The translations under genes were made by a program, and so were the position numbers. Below the pieces are notes generated by a model. It was not told the origin of the DNA. It saw only the letters and a program-made list of their open reading frames with translations, and made no database searches. From positions 141,228-205,227 of IMG/VR virus record IMGVR_UViG_3300031576_000002: a stretch of DNA of 64,000 nucleotides; one strand, given 5' to 3'. Numbering within the stretch: position 1 is the stretch's first letter; every line of letters begins with the position of its first letter. Positions 2,469 through 60,526 of this stretch are shown one piece after another.

Positions 2469-3176
2469 CTAAGTCGGGTTGGACTCGAAGGGAGCTTCTT
2501 CGGTCTCGGCTGCGTGAACAGCCTGCTGGAGCCTCTGAAGCAGGGTCGAGCCATTCGGCAACTTCTGGAGAACAGCTTCTACTTCTCGACGTAGATCCGA
2601 ATTCGGCTGGCGTAGCTCTGGATTGTGCAGGATCAACTGGATGGCGTCGGCCTGGTCCTTGACCCTCTTCGAGTCAAGCTTATAGCCCAGCAAGAGCCCC
2701 AGAGAGGGCACGAGAAGCTCCGTACCATGCACGGCCGTACGCGCGGACTCACCGCTCATCGCTGCATCGAGCTTGTCAGGATGGAACACCACTAGCTCGA
2801 TTACAACGCCTTCCTTGGCGTGCCGCAACTTCACGGGATCCAGGTTACCGCCCTCCCCCGTGACTCGGTCGAACCCGTACTTCTTGGAGAGCGCCATGAT
2901 TGGAGTGAGCGCGTTGTAGTCCACGGCAAAGTCAATATCCTTCGTCGCTCGCGTATAGTTGTAGACGTGCAGCGCATTGGATCCGATCAAGACGAACTCA
3001 ACTCCGGCAGCGTTCAAGAGTTTGACGGCATCCTTCATCGCTGCTGCGAAGTTGCCGCCCGCTCGGATATGGAGTCGTTGGAAAGACTCGCGGAGAAAGG
3101 TCGAGTTGAGCGCCATCACCTCATCGAGAGAGGCGGTGGGTGCCAAGCGATTCGCCAAGTTCTTGAGCCGTTCCAT
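2469..3176 (-). CDS. Nucleotidyltransferase (pol-beta superfamily, DUF6036/AbiEii-like)
   Basis: FVLIGSNALHVYNYTRATKDIDF = hhG[GS]xA...RxTxDhD signature; C-terminal K...RxKDxxD. Confidence 0.8.
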   Translation of the reverse strand: MERLKNLANRLAPTASLDEVMALNSTFLRESFQRLHIRAGGNFAAAMKDAVKLLNAAGVEFVLIGSNALHVYNYTRATKDIDFAVDYNALTPIMALSKKYGFDRVTGEGGNLDPVKLRHAKEGVVIELVVFHPDKLDAAMSGESARTAVHGTELLVPSLGLLLGYKLDSKRVKDQADAIQLILHNPELRQPNSDLRREVEAVLQKLPNGSTLLQRLQQAVHAAETEEAPFESNPT

Positions 3177-3218: not shown

Positions 3219-3629
3219 TTACCGTTCCCGCACAGAGGTCAGGTCAACGATTTCGGCCTGTCCAAACCCCGCTCTCACCATCCACGGCTTTGGCCTTGTC
3301 CAAAGGCTGAACCGGATGATTACATCTGAAATGCGCTTGGCTGCCTTCTTAGAATCTGCCAGGATCCGCTGATCTACCACAATAACACCCAACTCATACT
3401 CCATTGCAAGAAACACGAAATCCCCTGCATTAGAAGTAATCACGATCTCCCCAGCAGCGACCGTCTTCGCGATCTGAGGATCCTTCATTCCCCCCGGTAC
3501 AGCCTTGACGGTGATGTTCACGGCCTGCAAGCTGTCCAGAATAGAAGAGACGTCTTCATCCAGGACCACACGGCCTAGGGCCATGCCGGCTCTATCAAGC
3601 ACCGCCTGAACTTTGCGAAGACGTTTCAT
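3219..3629 (-). CDS. PIN-like domain protein (DUF5615/VapC45-like)
   Basis: VVLDEDV...KDPQIA...IVITSNAGDF acidic motifs; start moved to ATG 3629 because the longer start lies within the structured RNA. Confidence 0.75.
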   Translation of the reverse strand: MKRLRKVQAVLDRAGMALGRVVLDEDVSSILDSLQAVNITVKAVPGGMKDPQIAKTVAAGEIVITSNAGDFVFLAMEYELGVIVVDQRILADSKKAAKRISDVIIRFSLWTRPKPWMVRAGFGQAEIVDLTSVRER

Positions 3630-3679: not shown

Positions 3680-3800
3680 AGGGCGGCAGCATGCCACTTT
3701 CGTAGGCCCGGCTCCGCACCGGATCTACAGGAGTGTGTGGCTACATCCCGCTGCGCAGGCGCCAGGGCTTCCCAGTCCCCCGGGCACTTACTGCCGCCCT
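3680..3800 (-). ncRNA. Candidate 121-nt structured non-coding RNA (three-way junction, 5S-rRNA-like)
   Basis: 12-bp terminal stem AGGGCGGCAGUA/UGCUGCCGCCCU; arms CCCG/CGGG and GCCAC/GUGGC-UGUAG/CUACG-UCCGG/CCGGG; begins just after a TATAGT -10 box. Confidence 0.6.
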
Positions 3801-3803
3801 TCT

Positions 3804-3833
3804 ACTATACCCCTCAGAATCACGATTACGCGC
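3804..3833 (-). promoter_or_regulatory. Phage promoter GCGCGTAA-N16-TATAGT driving the ncRNA
   Basis: Matches the motif recurring across the window. Confidence 0.6.
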
Positions 3834-3951
3834 GGGCAGCCTCTACGGCCTCACCAGAAGCAACGATCTGCGTAGACTTGCGTCGAACCCTTTTTAGCGC
3901 CTCGACTTGAAGTTCGAGCGGCTGCCCGGCAGCATCGCAACCCTAACTTCT

Positions 3952-4575
3952 CTACGGCCCCAAAAGACGAATTGCTCTTCTGAGGTAGCCTGCTTGTACC
4001 GGCCCGTGCTCGCAATCATTCAGGCTCGGCCGCAAGCGGTGGTAGTAGTTCATGCGAATGGCCCAGTCCATCACACTCTTGACTCTGGACGGCTCAGGCG
4101 ACTCGCCAGGATCTCCCGTGCAGATGTAGCCTTGCAGATTGTCCTCGACGTCAAACACCTTGATTCCGTGCCCGCCCTCCCAGACAAGCCGGTGCCCGGT
4201 CTTCGGATCCTCGTCCTCGATGAGCGGCTCGACTTTGCCGTACTCACCCACGTTCGCGGGATCCGTTTCATCCCACCAGTGCGCGAGCAGATGCTTCAAC
4301 CGCGACTCTCGCCGGTGAGGCCGAATCCTTGAAGTCGTGTCCATGTAGCCAAGCCTCCGGTAGTCGAACCCTGGCAGAATAGCAATCTTCTGCTCCGGGA
4401 AATATCCACGCCTTTCCGTTACCGCGGACTGCCCCACGACCTCCGTAAACAGCGCTGGCAGCGCGGCAGGAGGAACCGTCGCAGCATGCCGGTTGTAGGC
4501 TGCGACTTCTCCACGCCCTGAGAAATCAAAGGATCCGGCTAGATGTGCAAGGATGTCATGCACGCCGTTTATCAT
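3952..4575 (-). CDS. C-terminal half of a split conserved phage protein (VHDxxxH...GExxAY...ALFTExxGQ)
   Basis: Continues the NLHFRG motif of 5067-5468; own ATG overlaps the HNH gene end. Confidence 0.75.
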   Translation of the reverse strand: MINGVHDILAHLAGSFDFSGRGEVAAYNRHAATVPPAALPALFTEVVGQSAVTERRGYFPEQKIAILPGFDYRRLGYMDTTSRIRPHRRESRLKHLLAHWWDETDPANVGEYGKVEPLIEDEDPKTGHRLVWEGGHGIKVFDVEDNLQGYICTGDPGESPEPSRVKSVMDWAIRMNYYHRLRPSLNDCEHGPVQAGYLRRAIRLLGP

Positions 4576-5089
4576 GAGGGCAGTAACCGTACAAACCGAG
4601 ACTCATATTGCAATTACAGCACAAAACCCGGTAACCCTCCGGATAGCCCTCTATTCTAAGCTCGTGAAATATCTCGCCCCTGTACCGAGATTTAGCTCTA
4701 TGCTGCCCACCCCCTCCACGGACGTGATCTAAGCACAAAAATTCGAGTAGCTCTTCCCCGCAGCATGCGCAGGCAGGGTGATCCAGCTTGCTGTAATGGC
4801 ATAGAGCTTCGTAGCGCTTGCTTCGCCGCCACTGCTTCAAATAAATTCGTCTCCTCTCCCGGAAAACAGGATCCTTTCCCCGTCGCCTGCTGTACTCTCG
4901 GAACTTCTCGGGACTAGCTTTGAAATACTCACGCGCCTGCCCCAAGACCTTCGCTCGAAACTCGGGCTCTTCGTGATACCGTTTGCGCTTGGCGGCAAGC
5001 ATGCACGCCTTGCACTTCCCGTAGGTACGGTAAAATTCTCTGCGTAGCTTAGCCGTCCCGCACCGATTACATATCTTTAGAGTGTCCAT
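4556..5089 (-). CDS. HNH (endonuclease VII-like) homing endonuclease
   Basis: N-terminal CxxC..CxxC; CACCG...LCLDHV...VLCCNCN...YGYCPH nuclease motif. Confidence 0.85.
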   Translation of the reverse strand: MDTLKICNRCGTAKLRREFYRTYGKCKACMLAAKRKRYHEEPEFRAKVLGQAREYFKASPEKFREYSRRRGKDPVFRERRRIYLKQWRRSKRYEALCHYSKLDHPACACCGEELLEFLCLDHVRGGGGQHRAKSRYRGEIFHELRIEGYPEGYRVLCCNCNMSLGLYGYCPHDKRRA

Positions 5090-5468
5090 GCACGTAGCAT
5101 AACATGAAAATACCCCGAAAGTGAAGGTTCTGATCTTGGGTAAAGAAAGGGTGCTCCGGACCTCCGGTGAATACCTTGAGCCGGTTGTTCTGCGTTACGT
5201 CCTCGACCATCTCCTCCGCATTGGCGTAAGGATTCTCGTCCACATACTCCACTTCAAACTTAGAAGTAATCCTGCGGAAAAGCTTGTCAAGATGAGCTAC
5301 GAGTGCTTGGTAGGACGGCACCGCAGACGCATCGTGAGCAGGCGCTTTCTCGTAAGCAGTAGCAACGGCTTCGAGGTATTCATCCCAGTCCACTGGCATC
5401 AACTTGGCCAAACGCTCAAGTAACTGCGCGTTTTTCTCTGGCGCAGGTGTATAGTAGTCAGCATGCAT
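5067..5468 (-). CDS. N-terminal half of the split protein (NPY...HP...NxxFRG)
   Basis: Conserved-looking part ends at FRG where the HNH insert begins; ATG lies inside the TIR of cassette 1. Confidence 0.75.
   Translation of the reverse strand: MHADYYTPAPEKNAQLLERLAKLMPVDWDEYLEAVATAYEKAPAHDASAVPSYQALVAHLDKLFRRITSKFEVEYVDENPYANAEEMVEDVTQNNRLKVFTGGPEHPFFTQDQNLHFRGIFMLCYVHGHSKDM
5426..5455 (+). promoter_or_regulatory. Phage promoter GCGCGTTT-N16-TATAGT, separated from the gene at 6712 by the cassette
   Basis: Motif match; TSD of cassette 1 overlaps the -10 box. Confidence 0.45.
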
Positions 5469-6687
5469 GACTGCTTAAGCCGCCACTTGCATAGCAGGTA
5501 AGCAGCCTTCTCGTTTCACAGAGGAACTTACAAGCGTATCCTCTCCACGAAGGGATAGCAGAGCCCGGTTTAAGACGTTTTTAGCCGCGTTGACATCTCT
5601 ATCAAGGACCAAGCCACAAGCAGAGCAGATATGGACTCTTTCACTCAAACTCTTCTTCACAGTCATTCCACATCCGCTGCACTCTTGGCTGGTGCCTCTG
5701 GGATTGACTTTTACCACTATCCTACCAGCTTCTTCCGCTTTGTAGGACAGCATGTGGAGCAACATCCCCATTCCAACATCTTTGAAGCTACGCCTGAATC
5801 CACGGCTGAGACCCTGGCTCATACCTTTCAGGTTCAAGTCTTCCACCGCAATCAGATCATACTCTTTGACCAAAGACTTAGACACTCCATCAAGAATATG
5901 CTTCCGAGTTCTTGTAACTTTCTGCCAAGCCTTAGCCAGTACCTTGACGGCTTTCCTTCTACGCTTAGATCCCTTCTGTCTCCTGGATACCGTTCTTTGA
6001 GCATGCTTGAGCTTCTTCTCGTTCTTGGCGTAAACACGTTGCCGCTCAATCAAGATGCCGTCTGAGGTAGCGACTAGAGCTTGCATGCCTAGATCAATGC
6101 CAATGACTTTGCCAGTCTTGAGAAGAGGAGCTGGAAGCGGTAGCTCACAGGATAAGACGGCGTACCAGCCGTCAGCTTCTCTTTTGACTGTGACCTCTTT
6201 AACCTTGGCATCAGGCGGAAGCTCCCGATAAGGATTCCAGCGGAAGTGTCCCAGCTTGGAAAGATGTAGCTTTTTGCTGTCAAACTTGAAACCTGACTGA
6301 TTGTATGTGAAGGAGTCGTACCGATCCCTACTCTTGAATCTGGGAAAGCCTGGCTTCTCTCCACGCTTGACTCTTCTGAAGAAAGCCTTGTACGTTTTGT
6401 CCAGTTTTTGAAGGACTGGGTGAAGAACTCTTGAATAGATCGTGTCATAGCCTTCTACCTGCTTTGAAACATACTTAAGCTCTAGGCACTGATCGTAGAA
6501 GCTGAGAGTTCTATTATGCTGCTTCCACTCCAGGATTCGTTGTTCCAAAGCACAGTTGTAGAGGAAGCGGCAGAAATCCAGAAGCCGCTGGAGATTGATC
6601 TCCTGGGCCTTGGTAGGTTGGAGGCGGAACTTGTAGGAACGGCGCACGGCTAGAGTGTATCACAAGGGAGTTAAGGAATCACGCATG
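5462..6687 (-). mobile_element. TIR-bounded tnpB cassette 1 (1226 bp, no transposase)
   Basis: Ends CATGCATGACTGCTTAA / rc CATGCGTGATTCCTTAA; flanking repeats TAGTAGTCAG (5452-5461) / TAGTAGTTAG (6688-6697). Confidence 0.85.
5475..6647 (-). CDS. tnpB: TnpB RNA-guided endonuclease, 390 aa
   Basis: YKFRLQPT...R.LYN.AL; RuvC GIDLG, AVEDL, DRDVNAAKN; Zn ribbon CSGCG/CSACG. Confidence 0.97.
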   Translation of the reverse strand: MRRSYKFRLQPTKAQEINLQRLLDFCRFLYNCALEQRILEWKQHNRTLSFYDQCLELKYVSKQVEGYDTIYSRVLHPVLQKLDKTYKAFFRRVKRGEKPGFPRFKSRDRYDSFTYNQSGFKFDSKKLHLSKLGHFRWNPYRELPPDAKVKEVTVKREADGWYAVLSCELPLPAPLLKTGKVIGIDLGMQALVATSDGILIERQRVYAKNEKKLKHAQRTVSRRQKGSKRRRKAVKVLAKAWQKVTRTRKHILDGVSKSLVKEYDLIAVEDLNLKGMSQGLSRGFRRSFKDVGMGMLLHMLSYKAEEAGRIVVKVNPRGTSQECSGCGMTVKKSLSERVHICSACGLVLDRDVNAAKNVLNRALLSLRGEDTLVSSSVKREGCLPAMQVAA

Positions 6688-9283: not shown

Positions 9284-9850
9284 CTACTGCCGCTTCGACG
9301 GTCGTTTCCTAGGCTTCCGGGATTCCACAAGTAACCTAGCTATCTCGTCGAACTCTTTCACAGCGTCGGGATCTACGATCGCCAGCAGCGCTCTCACCGT
9401 CGCCGGCTCGAAGGCTCCGGCGTCGTGCAACGCTTGGATGTCCCACAGGTCAAGAGGCTGGTTGGCGTAGAACTTTGCCATGACCAGCAGTTCCACGGGA
9501 AAGGTAGGAGCGTTCGTCCCCCACAACGTCTTCTGCACGGGATGGTCGATCGCCGAGGCTTCGGGTTCGTCCTCGGCGAAGAGCACGTCTACACGTTCCT
9601 TCACCCCACTAGCACCTGGAGGAAGGGCGATGTAGTGGTGCGGCGCAAAAACACGGTCCACTTGGAACCCGGCTTCCCGCAACGTCTTGAGCACTCGCCC
9701 CCTATCTCCCGGGCGGAAGAATGCGTCTACGTCCGCCGTGTACCGCGCAACGCCGTGCGCGTTCACAGCGGCTCCGCCTCCGACGGCATAGTCGATGCCC
9801 GCAGGCCCGACTGCTTGCACCAGGAGCTTCAGGATCTCTGCGGCTGTCAC
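9284..9850 (-). CDS. Second nucleotidyltransferase (same family as 2469-3176)
   Basis: YAVGGGAAVNAHGVARYTADVDAF; LVMAKF...PLDLWDI. Confidence 0.82.
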   Translation of the reverse strand: MTAAEILKLLVQAVGPAGIDYAVGGGAAVNAHGVARYTADVDAFFRPGDRGRVLKTLREAGFQVDRVFAPHHYIALPPGASGVKERVDVLFAEDEPEASAIDHPVQKTLWGTNAPTFPVELLVMAKFYANQPLDLWDIQALHDAGAFEPATVRALLAIVDPDAVKEFDEIARLLVESRKPRKRPSKRQ

Positions 9851-10112: not shown

Positions 10113-10889
10113 TCAGTCGTCGCTACCGTCATCGCCATCATCATCGTCGGTGCTGTCGTCGTCGTCACCATCATCGTCCGACGCCTCCGCCTTGGCAGTG
10201 CCCTCGTCGTCCTCTCCGCCTCCCTCGGCTGCCTCCTCTTCCTTCACCTTCTTGGCCTTCTTGACCTTCTTGGGAGCTTCCTCCTCCTCCTCAGCCTTGG
10301 CCTTCTTCACCTTCTTGGGGGCCTCCTCCGGCGCCTCAGCGGCCTTGGCCTTCTTACCCTTGCCCGTGTACTCGCCCCGGCCAACCTTCCTGAGTTCGCC
10401 CGCGTCACAGGCACGCTTGAGGTGGCCACTCGCACCCACGGCTTCGATCTCGAAGTGCTTCGCCACGTCGGTCGGGCTCACGACGTCCTTCTGCGCAGAG
10501 ACCCACTCCACGACGGCCGACATCTTGAGCCGCTTCTTCTCACTCTTTGCAACCTTCGGCTTCTCCGTACCGGCTGCCTTCACCTTGGCAGGCCGTCCGC
10601 GCTTTTTCGGCGCCTCGGTCGTCTCCTCCACCTTCACCTTGGCGGGCCGCCCCCGACGCTTCACGGGTGCGTCGCCGTCTCCCGTGGACTCGGCCGAAGC
10701 CGCCTTCACGAACGCGGAGACGAGCCCCAGTGGAATGCTGGACGCTCCCACGGTCACGTTGCCGGTGCCGTTCGCGCTGAACAGCACTTCGTCGCCCGCG
10801 TGCAGGGTCACTCGGCCACCCTTGGAGGACACGAGGCCGACGCCCTTCTGGTACTCCTGGCTCTTCGCAACTTCGATCCTGAAATCCAT
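10113..10889 (-). CDS. Histone/HMGA-like DNA-binding protein (2 AT-hooks, wHTH, acidic tail)
   Basis: KRRGRPAK and KKRGRPAK; SPTDVAKHF...GHLKRACDAGELRKVGRGEY; Asp-rich C-terminus; GGAGG SD. Confidence 0.8.
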   Translation of the reverse strand: MDFRIEVAKSQEYQKGVGLVSSKGGRVTLHAGDEVLFSANGTGNVTVGASSIPLGLVSAFVKAASAESTGDGDAPVKRRGRPAKVKVEETTEAPKKRGRPAKVKAAGTEKPKVAKSEKKRLKMSAVVEWVSAQKDVVSPTDVAKHFEIEAVGASGHLKRACDAGELRKVGRGEYTGKGKKAKAAEAPEEAPKKVKKAKAEEEEEAPKKVKKAKKVKEEEAAEGGGEDDEGTAKAEASDDDGDDDDSTDDDDGDDGSDD

Positions 10890-11965: not shown

Positions 11966-12014
11966 GGAGTCTCCTTTCAAAAATATCATACAACCGCATT
12001 CAAAAAATTTCCGG

Positions 12015-12088
12015 TGGGCACGGAAGGAATCGAACCTTCGACCACTCGGTTAAAAGCCGAATGCTCTAACCAACTGAGCTACGCGCCC
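12015..12088 (-). tRNA. tRNA-Lys(UUU)
   Basis: GGGCGCG-TAGCTCAGTTGGTTAGAGCA-TTCGG-CTTTTAA-CCGAG-TGGTC-GAAGG-TTCGATT-CCTTC-CGTGCCC-A; followed by CCG, not CCA. Confidence 0.96.
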
Positions 12089-14372: not shown

Positions 14373-15955
14373 TTTCCCTCACGCTTGCGCGGGCTTGATG
14401 ACCATCACGGGTACACGACCGCCGCGCATCTTCAGGCATTCGTCTATCCGCTCTGCCACGTCTGCGAGCTTTTCCGCGTCCGCTTCTACTCTAGCCAGAG
14501 CTTTGGCATACTCTGCCCGCTCGAAATCTGGAAGATTGCGCAACACGATCGTCGCCGCGCTTCGGCCCAGATACACCATAGTAAGAGCCAGGTCGGATAG
14601 ATCCAGATGTCCCTCATCTATGCAGGTGTTGACAACTGCTTCAAGCCTACTCGTGGCGCGCTGCATGTCCTCCTGATAGACATCCTCTTCTGAATTCAAA
14701 ACGTCCTCCGATCCTCAAACTTGAAGCCTGCGGCTGCAAGGTGGGCGCTTACCTGCGCAATCGCGCGTGCTTGGTGAGCTGCGTACTCTACCGCGGTTCT
14801 GGGGATGTCCAGCTCCCGCTCTGAATTCTCGATCGCGTTCTCCAGGATCTTCCACGGCATCGACTCGACCAAGGCGAGGGTGTCTTCACTCACACGGCGG
14901 AAGATGAGTCCCGCGCTCGGATAGCCCCACATTTCTCCAATAGCGAGGAGGTTGACCTGGTTCTTCGTCCAGGCTACATGGACAGGGTTGAGAGCTTCAG
15001 TCGGCATTTTTGACGGCCTCCCTGACGCTGTCCAGCGTCCGCTCGATATCGCTCAGACGATCTACGATCGGCTGGACGGCTTCGTTCACATCAGAAGGCT
15101 GAGCCGTACTTCCTATCTCGCCAGAGATGTCTTCAAGCCTTTCCAAAATCTTGTCGTAGTCACCCTCGACGCTGCGGATCCGGTCGCGCAGGTAGCTGAA
15201 CTCCACCGCCATCCAGCGACGAAGTTGTTCGAGCGTCAGCTCTTCCGAATCGGCCGGCTGCACCGACGGCTGCAACGGCGACAGAACTGTAGGCTGGAGC
15301 TTTTCTGCTTTTTTCATCGAGCCCTCAGTGCGCCATACACGGCGCTGATTTTGGATGCTTAGAAGAATCGTAACGCAGGCGCAAAGTCCGGTAGAGCACG
15401 GACAAGTCCGCGTCTTCTGCGCCTCCTACTAGAATACCGTTCTTGTACACGTCGGCGCGGAATACTCGATCTGCGCCATCCCACCAGACCTCGGCCCAGA
15501 ATGCTGCCGCTGCTACGGGAGCCCAGACCGCTTGTGCCCGGAGTTGCTCTGCGGTACCAGCTTCTACTTCCAGGCCGGCGATGTCGGTCATGGTCAACGC
15601 ACTCTCGGATAGCTGAGGAGGGCGCATGTAGTTGTGCCAGCACAACTAGGTAGGCTTAGCCTTTCTACTTTCTAACTGCTCCAGATCTTTATGCGCCGCT
15701 CTCAAGGCAACAACAGAGTCCTTCAGGAAGTCGGAGATCACTTCTCGCTCCACCTGAGTCGTCGCTGTATCGAACTCTTGCCTGAGAAACTCCAACGCCT
15801 TCGTGTGCCGGTGGATCTGTCCAAGAATGCGTGCTCGTGCCTGGCGTATCTCAGATACTTTTCGCTTCTTCTTGGGCTCTTTCTTGGGCGGAAGTACCCG
15901 CGTGGACCCGAAGTCATTCATGAAGTCTTCGGCGGCTGGAAACTATCACCTTTAT

Positions 15956-17167
15956 GCGACAGAAGAGGCCGCTCTGTGCTACAGTATCGGCTATGATTCA
16001 GCTCACCCTCCGACTCAAGCTCAGGCCAACTCCTGAGCAGAAGTCTATCTTCTATACCACCTCGGAGCAGCATACTCAATCTTACAACTACGCCTGCAAC
16101 TTTGGCTGGAAGAACAGCACTGCCAACCGGATCGAGATTCATCATGGTGTCTACCGTGCCCAAAGAGAGGCGACTCAGCTTCCTTCTCAACTTGTCGTAT
16201 CCAGCATTACCAGGGCTTCTGAATCTCTAGCCTCTGCCAAAGCCTTGAGAAGGAAAAAGAAGAAAGTAGCCTGTCCAAAGTCCAAACTCTGCCCCATCCG
16301 ATACGATTCAAGATCCTCCACAGTCAATCTCAAAGAAGGCTTTGCCGCTCTAGCAACCGTATCCGGCAGACAAAGAGTCCAGTTCAAAGTCCCTGACTTT
16401 CAACTTCCATACATTGACTGGAAAGTCTGCTCTTCCGATCTTATCCGGAATAGGAAGGGTAACTACTTCCTTCATGTCGTAGTCAGCCGTGAAGAGGAAC
16501 CGTTCATACCCGTTAAGAGAACAGTCGGAGTCGATCTTGGTATCACGCATCCAGCCGTAACTTCCAAGAACAAGTTTTTGGGTAAGAGGAGCTGGAAGAA
16601 CGTAGAAAGGAGAAACTTCAAACTGAGGCGTTCCCTTCAAGCCAAAGGCACAAAATCTGCCAAGAGACATCTTCAAAAGCTCTCTGGTAGACAGAAACGT
16701 TTCCGGCGTGACTGTGACCGTGTCTTGAGTAAGCAGTTGGTCCAGTCTTGTAAGAAGGGTTCTACCTTGGTATTTGAAAACTTGAAAGAGATCCGATCCG
16801 GTAACTCCAAAGGCAAGAGGTTCAACCGGAAGCTCCACGGTTGGAGCTTTGACCAACTTCAAGCCTTTGTAGAGTACAAAGCAAAGATGAGAGGTATCCA
16901 AGTTGTTTACGTGGATCCCCGGTACACCTCTCAGAAATGCTCCAAGTGTAAGTTCAGGAGCAAGAAAAACCGGATCTCTCAAAGTAGCTTCCAGTGTCGA
17001 AGCTGCGGGTTCAGGATTCATGCTGATCTCAATGCAGCTAGAAACATACGGAAGCGGTATCTTTTTACTCAGGCTAAAAGTTTGGGTAACGGGCTTATGT
17101 CAACAAGCCTAGTGCAGAGGTCAAAAGATCATCTGCAAGCTGCCTGCTTCGGCCGGTAGTAGTTGAT
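15956..17167 (+). mobile_element. IS200/IS605-family (IS1341-type, tnpB-only) insertion
   Basis: Inserted after TTTAT (15951-15955); right end hairpin ...GCTGCCTGCTTCGGCCGGTAGTAGTTGAT; removal restores stop codon (CFLA-TAA) of the interrupted minus-strand gene; ends uncertain by a few bp. Confidence 0.75.
15993..17159 (+). CDS. tnpB: TnpB RNA-guided endonuclease (distinct lineage)
   Basis: VGVDLG, LVFENL, YTSQKCSKC, CRSCG, HADLNAARN; leaderless after TGTGCTACAGT. Confidence 0.95.
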   Translation: MIQLTLRLKLRPTPEQKSIFYTTSEQHTQSYNYACNFGWKNSTANRIEIHHGVYRAQREATQLPSQLVVSSITRASESLASAKALRRKKKKVACPKSKLCPIRYDSRSSTVNLKEGFAALATVSGRQRVQFKVPDFQLPYIDWKVCSSDLIRNRKGNYFLHVVVSREEEPFIPVKRTVGVDLGITHPAVTSKNKFLGKRSWKNVERRNFKLRRSLQAKGTKSAKRHLQKLSGRQKRFRRDCDRVLSKQLVQSCKKGSTLVFENLKEIRSGNSKGKRFNRKLHGWSFDQLQAFVEYKAKMRGIQVVYVDPRYTSQKCSKCKFRSKKNRISQSSFQCRSCGFRIHADLNAARNIRKRYLFTQAKSLGNGLMSTSLVQRSKDHLQAACFGR

Positions 17168-17968: not shown

Positions 17969-18769
17969 CTATATTTCTGTCCAGGCTCGAACCCGTTCTC
18001 GGCACTCCGCCAGATACCCCTCTTGCAGGTCCAGGAAGTGCCAGGACTTGTAAAGAATGAAAGGACTGTGCGAGGTTGCGATGACCTGGAAACGCTTCGC
18101 CAGTTTGGGAACGATCTCATTCCAGAGAACCATTTGATTCGGCAGGCTCAGGCTCATGTCAGGTTCATCGAGCAGAATCGTACTCGGGCCTGTCCGTGGA
18201 AGCGTCTTCACGTACTCCGAGAACGCTGTCCAGCCCTCTACCCACAGGCTGTTATATTTCCGATCTGGATTTTTTGTAAGGTCCGGAACTTGATCCAGCA
18301 ACTCTGCGATTCTTTCAATCTTATGGATTCGCCGCTGTCCCTCGCTCGGCTTTTGCGCGATCTCCTGAATCTGGTCCTTCATCGAAGTCATGCCATCGGC
18401 AGAATTCTCGGCCCGGTCCACGAAGAAGGAAAGCCCGTCTCGATCCGCGGCTGCATTGAGAAAGGTTGGAGTCCCGTCCCATTCTATATTTGCAGTACAC
18501 TGGCCCGGTGCTCGTATGGCTAAGCAGTCTGGAAGATTGGGCGGCTTCCTCCGCAAAACCCCGATCTCGATAATGTCTCCGGGGTCAGGGTGTTTCGACC
18601 AGCCTCCTGTCGTGATCCCGCAGTAGACCCCCGTGATCTTGAGCGCAGTCGTCTTCCCGCACCCGTTCGGCCCAAAGAGAATGTTGACTCCGGGCTTGAA
18701 CTTGAGCTTGCCCTTGAACGCAGGAAGCTGCGCGGCAAAGCCCGTCTTGACTCGGAAGGACTGGATCAT
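17969..18769 (-). CDS. ABC/AAA-type ATPase
   Basis: Walker A GPNGCGKTT, signature SEGQ, Walker B ILLDEPD, H-loop TSHSP; leaderless ATG 18769. Confidence 0.9.
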   Translation of the reverse strand: MIQSFRVKTGFAAQLPAFKGKLKFKPGVNILFGPNGCGKTTALKITGVYCGITTGGWSKHPDPGDIIEIGVLRRKPPNLPDCLAIRAPGQCTANIEWDGTPTFLNAAADRDGLSFFVDRAENSADGMTSMKDQIQEIAQKPSEGQRRIHKIERIAELLDQVPDLTKNPDRKYNSLWVEGWTAFSEYVKTLPRTGPSTILLDEPDMSLSLPNQMVLWNEIVPKLAKRFQVIATSHSPFILYKSWHFLDLQEGYLAECRERVRAWTEI

Positions 18770-18820
18770 CGGACGTACTATACAGCGCGCTTCCAAAAAT
18801 ACGCACCTATCCCGTCGAGC

Positions 18821-20046
18821 CATGCGTGACTCCTTAAGCCCTCTGTGCTACCATCCAGCCATGCGGCGTTCCTACAAGTTCCGGCTTCAACCGACCAAGG
18901 CTCAGGAGATCAATCTCCAGAGGCTCCTGGACTACTGCCGCTTTCTCTACAACTGCGCTTTGGAGCAGCGTATTACAGAATACAAACAGCATAAGAGGAC
19001 TCTCAGCTACTACGATCAAGCCTTAGAACTTAAGCACGTATCCAAGCAGGTAGAAGGCTACGACACAGTCTACGCCAAAGTCTTGCAGGTTGTCCTTCAA
19101 AAACTGGATCTAGCTTACAAGGCTTTCTTCAGAAGGATCAAGCGTGGAGAGAAGCCGGGCTTTCCACGGTTCAAGAGTAGGGATCGGTACGACTCCTTTA
19201 CCTACAACCAGTCTGGTTTCAAGTTTGACAGTCAAAGGCTGCATCTTTCCAAGCTGGGCCATTTCCGCTGGAATCCTTATCGACAACTTCCACCAGACGA
19301 TAAGGTCAAAGAGGTCACAGTCAAAAGAGAAGCCGACGGTTGGTACGCAGTCTTATCCTGTGAGCTACCCCTTCCAGAACCTCTTCCCGCGACTGGAAAG
19401 GTCGTTGGTATTGATCTAGGCATGCAAGCTCTAGTTGCTACCTCAGATGGAATCGTAATTGAACGCCAACGTGTCTACGCCAAGAATGAGAAGAAGCTCA
19501 AGCATGCTCAGAGAACGGTTTCCAGAAGAAAGAAAGGCTCTAACCGTAGAAGAAAAGCAGTCAAGGTATTGGCTAAGGCTTGGCAGAAAGCTACAAGAAC
19601 TCGGAAGCATATTCTTGATGGAGTGTCTAAGCAGTTGGTACAGAACTATGATCTGATTGCGGTTGAAGACCTGAACCTGAAAGGGATGAGTCAAGGGCTC
19701 AACCGTGGATTCAGGCGTAGCTTCAAGGATGTCGGAATGGGGATGTTGCTTCACATGCTGTCCTACAAAGCGGAAGAAGCTGGTAGGATAGTGGTGAAAG
19801 TAGATCCCAGAGGAACCAGCCAGGAATGTAGTGGATGCGGAGCAACTGTGAAGAAGAGTTTGAAAGAAAGAGTTCATAACTGCTCTGCTTGTGGCTTGGT
19901 CCTTGATAGAGATGTCAACGCGGCTAAAAACGTCTTAAGCAGGGCTCTGCTATCCCTTCGTGGAGAGGATACGCTTGTAAGTTCCTCTGTGAAGCGAGAA
20001 GATTTCTTAAGTGCTGCTCAGGCAGCGGCTTAAGCAATCACGCATG
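18821..20046 (+). mobile_element. TIR-bounded tnpB cassette 2 (1226 bp, no transposase)
   Basis: CATGCGTGACTCCTTAAGCC ... GGCTTAAGCAATCACGCATG (18/20 IR); flanking CCCGTCGAGC (18811-18820) / CCCGTCGAAT (20047-20056). Confidence 0.88.
18861..20033 (+). CDS. tnpB: TnpB RNA-guided endonuclease, 390 aa, paralog of 5475-6647
   Basis: About 41 differences in 390 aa by manual count; RuvC D/E/D intact; real start ATG 18861. Confidence 0.97.
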   Translation: MRRSYKFRLQPTKAQEINLQRLLDYCRFLYNCALEQRITEYKQHKRTLSYYDQALELKHVSKQVEGYDTVYAKVLQVVLQKLDLAYKAFFRRIKRGEKPGFPRFKSRDRYDSFTYNQSGFKFDSQRLHLSKLGHFRWNPYRQLPPDDKVKEVTVKREADGWYAVLSCELPLPEPLPATGKVVGIDLGMQALVATSDGIVIERQRVYAKNEKKLKHAQRTVSRRKKGSNRRRKAVKVLAKAWQKATRTRKHILDGVSKQLVQNYDLIAVEDLNLKGMSQGLNRGFRRSFKDVGMGMLLHMLSYKAEEAGRIVVKVDPRGTSQECSGCGATVKKSLKERVHNCSACGLVLDRDVNAAKNVLSRALLSLRGEDTLVSSSVKREDFLSAAQAAA

Positions 20047-44441: not shown

Positions 44442-44771
44442 ATTAGACACCCCTCTTGGCTTGAGCCTCGCACTCGTCGAGTGCATCAATCACGTCGATC
44501 CAGGCTGTCGCGTTCTCGTTCTCGACCTCCTCCAGCTCCTTCCTCCAGTCCGGGTTGCGTTGGTCAAGCGTCTCCAGCAGGACTCTGGCCGCTTCCACCA
44601 GCCGGTCGCAGGGAGACGGTTCCTTCTGGGGCTCAACAATCGACGGCAATGGCGTCGATTTTGGGCCGTAGACTGCTTTCTGCGGCTGGGCCGGACTACG
44701 ACGGCCACTTCGCGGTGACTGCCTCCCCAGGGCCTGGCCTGGCCGCACTTTCGCCTCTGCACGCTTCTTGG

Positions 44772-55875: not shown

Positions 55876-56486
55876 CGCTACCTACTATACCCTGCACACT
55901 TAGGCTTCTTGCACGCCTTCGCGTCTTGATCCGCCGTCGCGTTGGCGAGACAGATCCGCTCGATCTCGGCAGGCCGAGATGCTTCTAGCTTGCGCAAATG
56001 GCAAATGCCGTGCTTCTTGGAATACCAGAAGCACTCACGGGGGTAGACAGGCTGGCTAGCGGACAACGCGACCCTCTCGGCTCGCGCGCCAGGATAAACC
56101 GCCTCAGCTTAATCGTCAATCAAAGTGACGAATTATGCGGGCCAGACGCTCATGGATGCCTGGAACTCGCTCCCATTCGTCCGTCTGCGCGGCATCTTCT
56201 GCTGCCGCATCGGTGTCGATGTAGCGCTCCAGATCTTCCCCAAAGACTGCTCGCAGGTCTTCTGGATTGTCGAGCAGCTCGTTCAACTCGGACTGCGCTC
56301 TAGCCTCGATCAAGCTCTCGCCCAGTAGGTCGCCGGCAGCGTCTCGTACCATGCTGCGCATTTCCGGCTCCAGGTCTTCTCGCAGCCGGTCATAGTCGAG
56401 ATGCCTCGCCAGCCAAACAGGATCGAATGTCTCAGGCTGCTCGTGTAGATCGGCGGTGAGCTGCCTTACGAGTTCTCTGAATAGGG

Positions 56487-59506: not shown

Positions 59507-60067
59507 TTATACACGCGCCCCGCGTGTAGCTTTCGCTTTCGTGGCCTGCTTGACCGCCTCTACTGCATAATAGCTCGGTCGGGTAGGATCTCCTGCTGGA
59601 GCGCCCCACCCCTCCATCGGTGTAATCTGAATAACGGTAAGGCCCGCTTGTTCGGTCATAACTCGGGCACCTGCGTCGGTAAAGCGAAAGTAATCTTCTG
59701 GATCCCGATGGACAGGCTGGCAGAACGCTGCATGCCAGAGCAGTTGACCTTGGGGCCTCAACACTCTCGCGAATTCCTGTAGAGCCTGCCATGGAGCGTA
59801 GACATGTTCGAGAAGTGCTAGGGCAAGGACACGGTCGAAGCTCTGCTCTCGGAACGGTAGGTAGACACAATCTGCTCTGACGCTCGAAGACTCCTCTCGC
59901 TTTTCTGTATGGAAGTCAGCACATATATGCCGCGCCTTCTGAGATGAGATCTCTTCTGTCTTTGGATAACGGCCAGAGCCTACTTCCAAGACTCGGGCGC
60001 CTTCAGGGATCGCCAAGATCCAGTTGACAAAGACCTTATCGCTGTGACGGTCTGCCCAGATAGGCAA
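59507..60067 (-). CDS. Class I SAM-dependent methyltransferase (Methyltransf_11-like)
   Basis: VLEVGSG, LPFREQSFD, LLEHV..P, RVLRPQG, DYFRFT. Confidence 0.88.
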   Translation of the reverse strand: MPIWADRHSDKVFVNWILAIPEGARVLEVGSGRYPKTEEISSQKARHICADFHTEKREESSSVRADCVYLPFREQSFDRVLALALLEHVYAPWQALQEFARVLRPQGQLLWHAAFCQPVHRDPEDYFRFTDAGARVMTEQAGLTVIQITPMEGWGAPAGDPTRPSYYAVEAVKQATKAKATRGARV

Positions 60068-60118
60068 GGTTACGCTACCTAGTTGTGCTGCTACAACTAG
60101 GCAGGGTAATCCTGCCTA

Positions 60119-60526
60119 TCAGAGCCTCGGATCCGTCACGGTGTAGGCTGCTACCAGATCCTTGAGAAGGATCAGGTTTACATGCGCGGGAATCCGCAGC
60201 AACCACTCCGCACCAGCCTTCTGTATTTGCAGTCGGATTGTGAGTGCATCCCCGTTTGTACTTTTCAGAATTCTTAGTTGATTGATCGGGTTCGAGCTGA
60301 TCTCACCCTCTTGGTCAGTCTTCACCATAACAGTATCGATCGCTACGAGATCGTGAACATTGAAGTGCGGCGGCTTGTACACTGTTACCGTTACTTCTAC
60401 TTCTGGAACGGGGTATCCAGTGAGATCGCGGACGTTCCCCTTGATCGTGATGAACCGATCAAAGGGAAGATGAAATCCCTGGCTGACGTAGAAACCTTCC
60501 GTGTACAACGAAAGGGCGGTGAGCAC
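60119..60526 (-). CDS. Probable structural protein (beta-sandwich-like)
   Basis: IKGNVRDLTG.PV...VKTDQEG. Confidence 0.5.
   Translation of the reverse strand: MLTALSLYTEGFYVSQGFHLPFDRFITIKGNVRDLTGYPVPEVEVTVTVYKPPHFNVHDLVAIDTVMVKTDQEGEISSNPINQLRILKSTNGDALTIRLQIQKAGAEWLLRIPAHVNLILLKDLVAAYTVTDPRL

Follow-up and report, generated by a model that had tools for sequence, protein, structure and literature searches.

A GC-rich segment closed by a terminal helix as a candidate structured 5' leader of a PIN-like operon in an orphan phage

A candidate structured leader ahead of a PIN-like gene

A segment of about 120 nucleotides on the minus strand of an uncultivated phage genome (~3800-3680) is read here, tentatively and with a likelihood that we place a little short of one half, as the cis-acting structured 5' leader of the mRNA of a PIN-like operon. 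The segment follows a promoter that belongs to a family recurring in the phage, its two ends form a helix, it is a GC island, it is non-coding, and no terminator was found between it and the PIN-like gene. All positions refer to the window, by which we mean the whole 64-kb stretch of DNA that was analysed; it makes up the final 64 kb (bases 141228-205227) of a 205-kb linear IMG/VR record whose completeness is estimated at 85 %. The source of the contig is a cave metagenome, and the sole public run that contains the sequence is apparently the source sample, no RNA-seq run being listed; read mapping recovered only the source contig, with no variants. The phage is an orphan, and its portal protein has no close relative in IMG/VR.

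Almost all genes in the window, and the candidate RNA with them, are carried by the minus strand. Read 5' to 3' on that strand, a 207-aa gene ends with its stop at 3952, a 320-nt gap follows, and the PIN-like ORF comes next. Both the promoter (3833-3804) and the candidate RNA fall within this gap, and no plausible ORF was found between 3630 and 3951; a non-coding gap of this length is unusual for so tightly packed a genome. The gene upstream of the gap showed no synteny; its relatives, 200-220 aa in length, are distantly related proteins of phages, and some of them bear names from the TARA ocean survey. A 29-nt direct repeat (3841-3869 and 3950-3978, 72 % identity) amounts to a copy of the last codons and stop of this upstream gene within the gap, and it is only marginally above chance, 7 of 300 shuffles having given an equally good repeat.

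A recurrent promoter family predicts the transcription start

The -10 hexamer of the promoter, TATAGT (3809-3804, minus), is followed by an A, matching the family consensus (G)TATAGTA, and 24 nt upstream of it lies the block GCGCGTAA (3833-3826, minus), for which the family consensus is GTGCGTAAAA. The minus strand of the phage has 24 copies of TATAGT; at about 12 of these sites a GTGCGTAAAA-like sequence is found ~24-25 nt upstream and an A stands after the hexamer, which gives the family a layout of GTGCGTAAAA, about 13 nt, and (T)G TATAGTA. The first T of TATAGT lies at window positions 55889, 55095, 52558, 48497, 46405, 43344, 42534, 21624, 18782, 17937 and 3809 (all minus), and two more members are at genome positions 122432 and 121194. 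In order to score the candidate-RNA promoter, a matrix was built from the 12 sister sites with this one left out. The promoter reached 13.6 bits with a fixed spacer and 22.7 bits with a two-block PWM that allowed the spacer to vary by ±1. The minus strand holds 13 sites reaching 22.7 bits, this one included, whereas neither the plus strand nor any of 20 shuffled genomes contains one. The segment's description as promoter-driven in the original prediction is thereby upheld, and the promoter can be called real in that its motif recurs across the phage.

The start codon of a long ORF lies 2-8 nt past the hexamer in eight of the 12 sister promoters (6-8 nt in seven of them), indicating leaderless mRNAs, and the remaining four have Shine-Dalgarno-type leaders of 20-32 nt. 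From the positions of these start codons, the transcription start is predicted at about the seventh nucleotide after the hexamer, which for the candidate RNA would be ~G3797 (3796-3799, minus). The candidate-RNA promoter is the odd one out in the family, since the next GTG (3719) follows only after 84 nt, with no ribosome-binding site, and the ATG at 3629 after 174 nt. In a phage that is otherwise leaderless, a leader of this length suggests that the putative nuclease is expressed differently from its neighbours. The promoter family with its leaderless starts is the more solid by-product of this work; it can be used for annotating the orphan genome, and it hints at a host that uses leaderless translation. 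Two further minus-strand TATAGT sites of the same genome, outside the window at ~39113 and ~61577, have a common GGGCTTGCCTCAAAATT within a few bases. This sequence folds as a hairpin just upstream of the start codon, and the two sites may be further promoter-proximal hairpin leaders of the phage.

A closing helix is confidently predicted and the interior fold is not

The arms AGGGCGGCAG and CTGCCGCCCT (3680-3689 and 3791-3800) make up a perfect 10-bp inverted repeat, which in the minus-strand RNA gains one G-U and one A-U pair to give the 12-bp closing stem that had been proposed. This helix, designated P1 (5' strand 3800-3789, 3' strand 3691-3680, both minus), was identified from the inverted repeat and by folding. 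Its pair probabilities are ~1.0, except for the two terminal A-U pairs (0.75-0.76), and its length would be 9-12 bp depending on the true start. P1 was retained when the entire leader and the start of the ORF were folded together. TATAGT ends 3 nt upstream of P1, and P1 begins 0-3 nt from the predicted transcription start; a start at G3797 would keep nine of its pairs, with the first nucleotide already paired. The occurrence of a 10-bp repeat arm within ±4 nt of a promoter start, with its partner 50-200 nt away, is estimated at ~1e-3 per promoter and at ~1.5 % over the 13 promoters.

Between the strands of P1 (3788-3692, minus), the minimum free energy (MFE) structure consists of four hairpins, at 3786-3752, 3751-3727, 3722-3708 (5 bp, loop GCGGA) and 3707-3693 (GAAA loop). 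All four are ambiguous, with pair probabilities of 0.5-0.75, and alternative folds within 1.5 kcal/mol rearrange them; the closing helix is the sole part of the fold that the models predict with confidence. The two arms off a three-way junction that had been drawn for this RNA are accordingly found as one of several near-isoenergetic folds and not as a settled structure. The stability of folding is barely above what composition gives: z was -2.6 against dinucleotide shuffles (123-nt version), -2.1 against GC-matched native windows by regression on GC, with 112 of 8518 windows folding equally well or better, and -1.3 for the 120 nt counted from the predicted start. The 121-nt segment is a GC island (68.6 %, compared with 50 % and 56 % in its flanks) that lies in the top 1.4 % of genome windows. 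Because of G-U pairs, the minus strand (-63.4 kcal/mol) folds better by 8 kcal/mol than the plus strand (-55.4 kcal/mol).

The downstream genes and the 3' side of the fold

The gene behind the segment encodes a PIN-like (VapC45 / DUF5615-like) protein of 136 aa when started at ATG 3629 (3629-3219, minus). Longer versions of this ORF have been called, a mechanical one from GTG 3719 (166 aa) and a public gene from ATG 3692 (157 aa), which would overlap the candidate RNA; both are probably too long, judging from the relatives. The protein has no word-level relatives. An exhaustive HMMER search gave 74, mostly of 120-140 aa, whose alignments begin at residues 34-36 of the 157-aa form, and the family alignment shows the N-terminus of the 136-aa form to be of the usual length. 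An alternative start is the conserved Met 16 (ATG 3584, minus), which is nearly invariant in that alignment. Since the ORF start indicated by the family alignment is 3629 or a position after it, 3680-3800 is non-coding, and the start at 3719, which would have undermined the RNA interpretation, is not the real one according to the relatives.

The PIN-like protein itself had no Pfam, PHROG or PADLOC match. DUF5615 was found in four and Mut7-C in two of 26 relatives. An AlphaFold (AF2) model (pLDDT 88) gave as its best AFDB matches proteins named 'VapC45 PIN like domain' or 'DUF5615' (TM 0.55-0.69, probability 1.0); the PDB, queried with the fold as well as with the sequence, gave nothing informative. 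D24, E25, D50, T65, N67 and D70 are invariant or nearly so in the family and are all kept here, among them the catalytic-type acidic residues D24, E25, D50 and D70. The fold matches, the relatives and the conserved residues together make 'PIN ORF' a fair label. A nucleotidyltransferase-like ORF (3176-2469, minus) begins 42 nt after the PIN-like stop, in the same apparent operon. Its similarity to DUF6036 / DUF2204 is weak (E 6e-4, below the Pfam cut-off), and no PDB or PADLOC match was found for its product. The next ORF, of 1156 aa, had no family match. A second weak nucleotidyltransferase-like ORF of the MNT / AbiEii / DUF6036 type lies at 9284-9850 (minus) in the accessory region, and like that at 2469-3176 it is below Pfam cut-offs.

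Between the fold and the start codon lies an unstructured spacer of 50 nt (3679-3630, minus; 50 % GC) with no clear Shine-Dalgarno sequence. The 3' flank of the candidate RNA reads CUCUUUGCACUAUCUUCUAG... and has no U run, so that the U-rich flank of the original prediction was not recovered, and a terminator scan of 3800-3219 (minus) returned no terminator-like site. In the absence of a terminator, transcription should continue into the PIN-like gene, and the discrete 121-nt RNA that had been envisaged would exist only after processing. The segment thus has the promoter of its own that a stand-alone small RNA gene would have, with no 3' end defined by an intrinsic terminator, and it is placed as a cis-acting 5' leader would be, behind a promoter and ahead of the transcript's first ORF, all on one strand and uninterrupted by a terminator. 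Folding of the whole leader with the ORF start revealed no expression platform, that is, no alternative pairing with the start region.

Comparison with 5S rRNA and other RNA families

In order to compare the segment with described RNA families, Rfam 15 (4227 families) was searched. At the gathering threshold, the whole window gave tRNA-Lys alone, and at E <= 10 the 501-nt and 141-nt queries gave only noise: sroE at 19 bits within the PIN-like ORF, a 12-bit match to JUMPstart on the other strand, and fragments of lncRNA models from mammals. The 5S rRNA family (RF00001) had no match at the gathering threshold, which we take to be ~38 bits, or at E <= 10, including with the 141-nt query, for which scores of ~9 bits were listed. 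The proposed 5S mimicry therefore finds no support from the family model. The segment does share with 5S rRNA a length of ~120 nt, 5' and 3' ends that form the closing helix of a branched fold, and two short end motifs, GGCGGCAGUA and CGAAAGUGG..CUGCC, whose likeness to 5S is one by eye that brings no covariance-model score. Where 5S rRNA has a three-way junction (loop A) from which helices II-III and IV-V branch, together with motifs in loops C and E, the segment has no defined junction, P1 being the only confident element, and no loop C, an absence that had been remarked on from the start. Nor is it part of an rRNA operon; it follows a phage promoter of its own and leads into an mRNA. The question of phage mimicry of ribosomal RNA is not opened by this candidate.

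Rfam models for SRP, Y RNA, 6S, riboswitches and ribozymes were equally silent at E <= 10, so that the comparison with 5S, SRP, Y RNA and ribozymes proposed with the original prediction gave nothing. A hammerhead was rejected by eye, the segment having CUGUAGA and not CUGAUGA, with the wrong spacing, and the resemblance of GGCGGCAG to ops/JUMPstart is the 12-bit match on the wrong strand. With Y RNA and YrlA, the partners of Ro60, the candidate has in common that it is a small RNA with a long 5'-3' terminal stem, and a retron msr-msd would likewise have inverted repeats, which are present here. Both readings were dropped because the phage has no TROVE/Ro60 gene, in keeping with the lack of an Rfam match to Y RNA, and no reverse transcriptase (no RVT_1 anywhere in the 205-kb record). 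A Ro60 is on record from a Thermus phage (PMC12135203). A type III toxin-antitoxin RNA was also rejected, as there are no tandem direct repeats and no terminator before the toxin gene.

Search for relatives of the candidate RNA

Relatives of the candidate RNA were sought in several collections, and none was found in any set searched. In its own genome the RNA is single-copy, both by blastn and with a covariance model built from the candidate RNA itself (R1), and the element is phage-encoded. No match was found by blastn among INPHARED phages or PLSDB plasmids, nor in IMG/VR with one exact 23-mer and two exact 18-mers. An 8+8 pattern of P1 had at least 120 chance matches in IMG/VR, and none of those listed was similar by blastn or nhmmer. 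The 10+10 pattern of P1 matched at least 120 loci in GTDB genomes; those among the matches listed were of two kinds, neither of which shares the interior. One kind consists of coding regions kept in relatives, for instance those of thymidylate synthase in eleven Akkermansia species and, in Micromonospora, of a P-loop protein. The other consists of MITE-like repeats that are present several times in one and the same MAG. R1, applied to the first 100 of these GTDB loci, scored at most 30 bits, compared with 150 for the candidate itself. The MITE-like elements are 112-132 bp long with long terminal inverted repeats, start with AGGGCGGCAG, end with CTGCCGCCCT and have an interior unrelated to the phage RNA; among the matches listed, a Thermoanaerobaculia MAG has at least seven copies, and two other sets have at least four each.

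The loci of PIN-like homologues were also examined. At the ten for which DNA was available, no comparable upstream RNA was seen and R1 had no match; upstream of the homologues lie a small zinc-ribbon ORF, gaps of ~100 nt, or other genes that adjoin or overlap. As these upstream regions are short or coding and hold no such RNA, the leader is not conserved along with the gene. One instance that lacks homologues offers no covariation and defines no class, and the new ncRNA class that had been considered is not claimable from one unconserved instance with marginal thermodynamic support.

A predicted role in cis for the leader

In the mechanism that we propose, a promoter of the GTGCGTAAAA...TATAGTA family would initiate at ~G3797, and the stretch would make up the first ~120 nt, in folded form, of a 5' leader of ~170 nt on an mRNA that codes for the PIN-like nuclease, the nucleotidyltransferase-like protein and probably the 1156-aa ORF. 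The first transcribed bases would pair with 3691-3680 once this 3' strand emerges, ~110 nt later. P1 would then close a compact GC-rich domain with no free 5' end, and RNA polymerase would proceed into the PIN-like gene with no terminator in its way. The most likely role of a domain that caps the mRNA of the PIN-like / nucleotidyltransferase-like operon would be a cis-acting one: the paired 5' terminus could shield the transcript against 5'-end-dependent RNases, and the leader may set the level or the timing of expression of a potentially toxic nuclease. Just as well, the domain might serve as a binding platform for a regulator.

A base-paired first nucleotide protects transcripts from RNase E and RppH in proteobacteria and from RNase J in many other phyla, and 5' stabilisers are known from the E. 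coli ompA 5' UTR, from Bacillus ermC and aprE, and from phage SP82. The candidate resembles these in having a helix at or a few nucleotides from +1, no single-stranded 5' end, and a cis position before the coding region with no terminator; it differs in being much larger and multi-branched, in belonging to no sequence family and in being known from sequence alone. It also has in common with putL and putR of phage HK022 that a structured RNA forms the first part of a phage operon transcript. The put RNAs are two-stem elements of ~70 nt with defined RNA polymerase contacts that act in promoter-proximal antitermination, and no terminators were identified downstream of the candidate leader. If the fold is real, a jumbo-type phage would be equipping a single operon with a long structured leader against a background of almost entirely leaderless transcripts. 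Such an exception would suggest that a potentially toxic gene pair, the PIN-like nuclease and the nucleotidyltransferase-like enzyme, is under special control.

Alternative explanations

The stretch may instead have no function at the RNA level, a chance inverted repeat of 10-12 bp having come to lie in a GC-rich spacer after a real promoter; we hold this to be doubtful and yet a substantial possibility, in which case the spacer could have been left behind when a gene was lost or when mobile DNA moved through this region full of HNH and TnpB genes. Perfect inverted repeats of at least 10 bp spaced by 50-200 nt number 12 in the window, and 21 overlapping 10-mer matches occur at this spacing, compared with a mean of ~11 in shuffles, which is near the chance rate. 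The z-scores of just -1.3 to -2.6, the ill-defined interior, the lack of a homologue in any set searched and surroundings rich in mobile elements (HNH and TnpB genes) would all be expected of such a spacer. However, chance does not readily explain why one arm of the repeat falls at the start predicted for a promoter that was defined independently, why the GC island stands out between AT-richer flanks, or why so packed a genome has a 320-nt non-coding gap here. The candidate rises above noise because of the repeat arm at the promoter start, the GC island and the minus-strand folding advantage, and on balance we give purposeful RNA structure somewhat more than an even chance. The terminal inverted repeats and the foreign GC content could also belong to a DNA-level element, namely a MITE, a recombination site or an operator with the 10-bp repeats as its borders, and unrelated multi-copy elements with the same termini do exist in some bacterial MAGs. 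This is very unlikely, as the element is single-copy in the phage, the repeats are just 10-12 bp long and the interior is unrelated to the MAG elements; a MITE in particular was rejected, for neither multiple copies nor a target-site duplication in the flanks was found.

Among readings in which the RNA is functional, it could be a stand-alone or processed small RNA that is cut from the leader, possibly by the PIN-like nuclease, and acts in trans, either as a type III-like RNA antitoxin or inhibitor of the PIN-like protein or as a substrate or decoy for the nucleotidyltransferase-like enzyme. Its place directly upstream of a PIN-fold gene is that of the antitoxin in toxin-antitoxin pairs, no protein partner is encoded there, the domain is compact and self-contained, and this PIN-like copy keeps D24, E25, D50 and D70. 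Nevertheless, this reading is unlikely: a terminator and tandem repeats are both missing, PIN-like homologues elsewhere share no conserved partner, whether RNA or protein, and PADLOC gave no match. Its most specific version, a single-member phage ncRNA that is released by processing and works with the two enzymes behind it, as an antitoxin or inhibitor of the PIN-like protein or as a tRNA-minihelix-like substrate or decoy of the nucleotidyltransferase, is more improbable still; the 12-bp terminal helix has the length of an acceptor plus T stem. An ncRNA is located upstream of AbiF in phage (PMC12373285), and the candidate shares with this RNA and with ToxI/ToxN the arrangement of a promoter-driven ncRNA set directly before a nuclease-like toxin gene in a phage. 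It differs from both in having no tandem repeats and no terminator before the gene, in its PIN-like fold in place of ToxN or Abi_2, and in the lack of a conserved RNA-protein pairing among the PIN-like homologues. A phage-encoded mimic or decoy of 5S rRNA is scarcely credible, as the length of ~120 nt, the paired ends and the short linear likenesses are outweighed by the silence of RF00001, the interior that does not settle into the 5S three-way junction, the missing loop C motif and the missing ribosomal context. The cis-acting leader of the PIN-like operon mRNA is retained as the best explanation.

Genomic surroundings

Several further features of the window were noted. A gene of the phrog_3170 family is split in two (N-half 5070-5468, C-half 3955-4575, both minus), an unsplit homologue elsewhere having 229 aa. 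An HNH / endonuclease-VII-type ORF (4559-5089) lies exactly between the halves and overlaps both of their ends, and the C-half has an ATG start of its own. Rfam gave no group I intron signal in 3955-5468, and the HNH ORF appears to be a free-standing homing endonuclease, with the phrog_3170 gene as the target it has split. The 64 kb also contain three TnpB / IS605-OrfB-type genes (5475-6647, minus; 15954-17159, plus; 18633-20033, plus), and the Rfam IS605-orfB motifs did not fire at any of them. A tRNA-Lys (UUU) gene is found at 12013-12088 (minus), and a tRNA-Arg (UCG) gene elsewhere in the phage genome. An ORF of 258 aa (10113-10889, minus) combines lysine/alanine-rich AKKxK repeats with a tail that is rich in Asp and extremely acidic. 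On both strands, the local structure of greatest stability in the window is a long imperfect hairpin at 60054-60125 (z ~-5), with 33-nt arms that are 82 % complementary and a 6-nt loop, and the second most stable local fold lies at 44580-44720 (plus; z ~-4.1).
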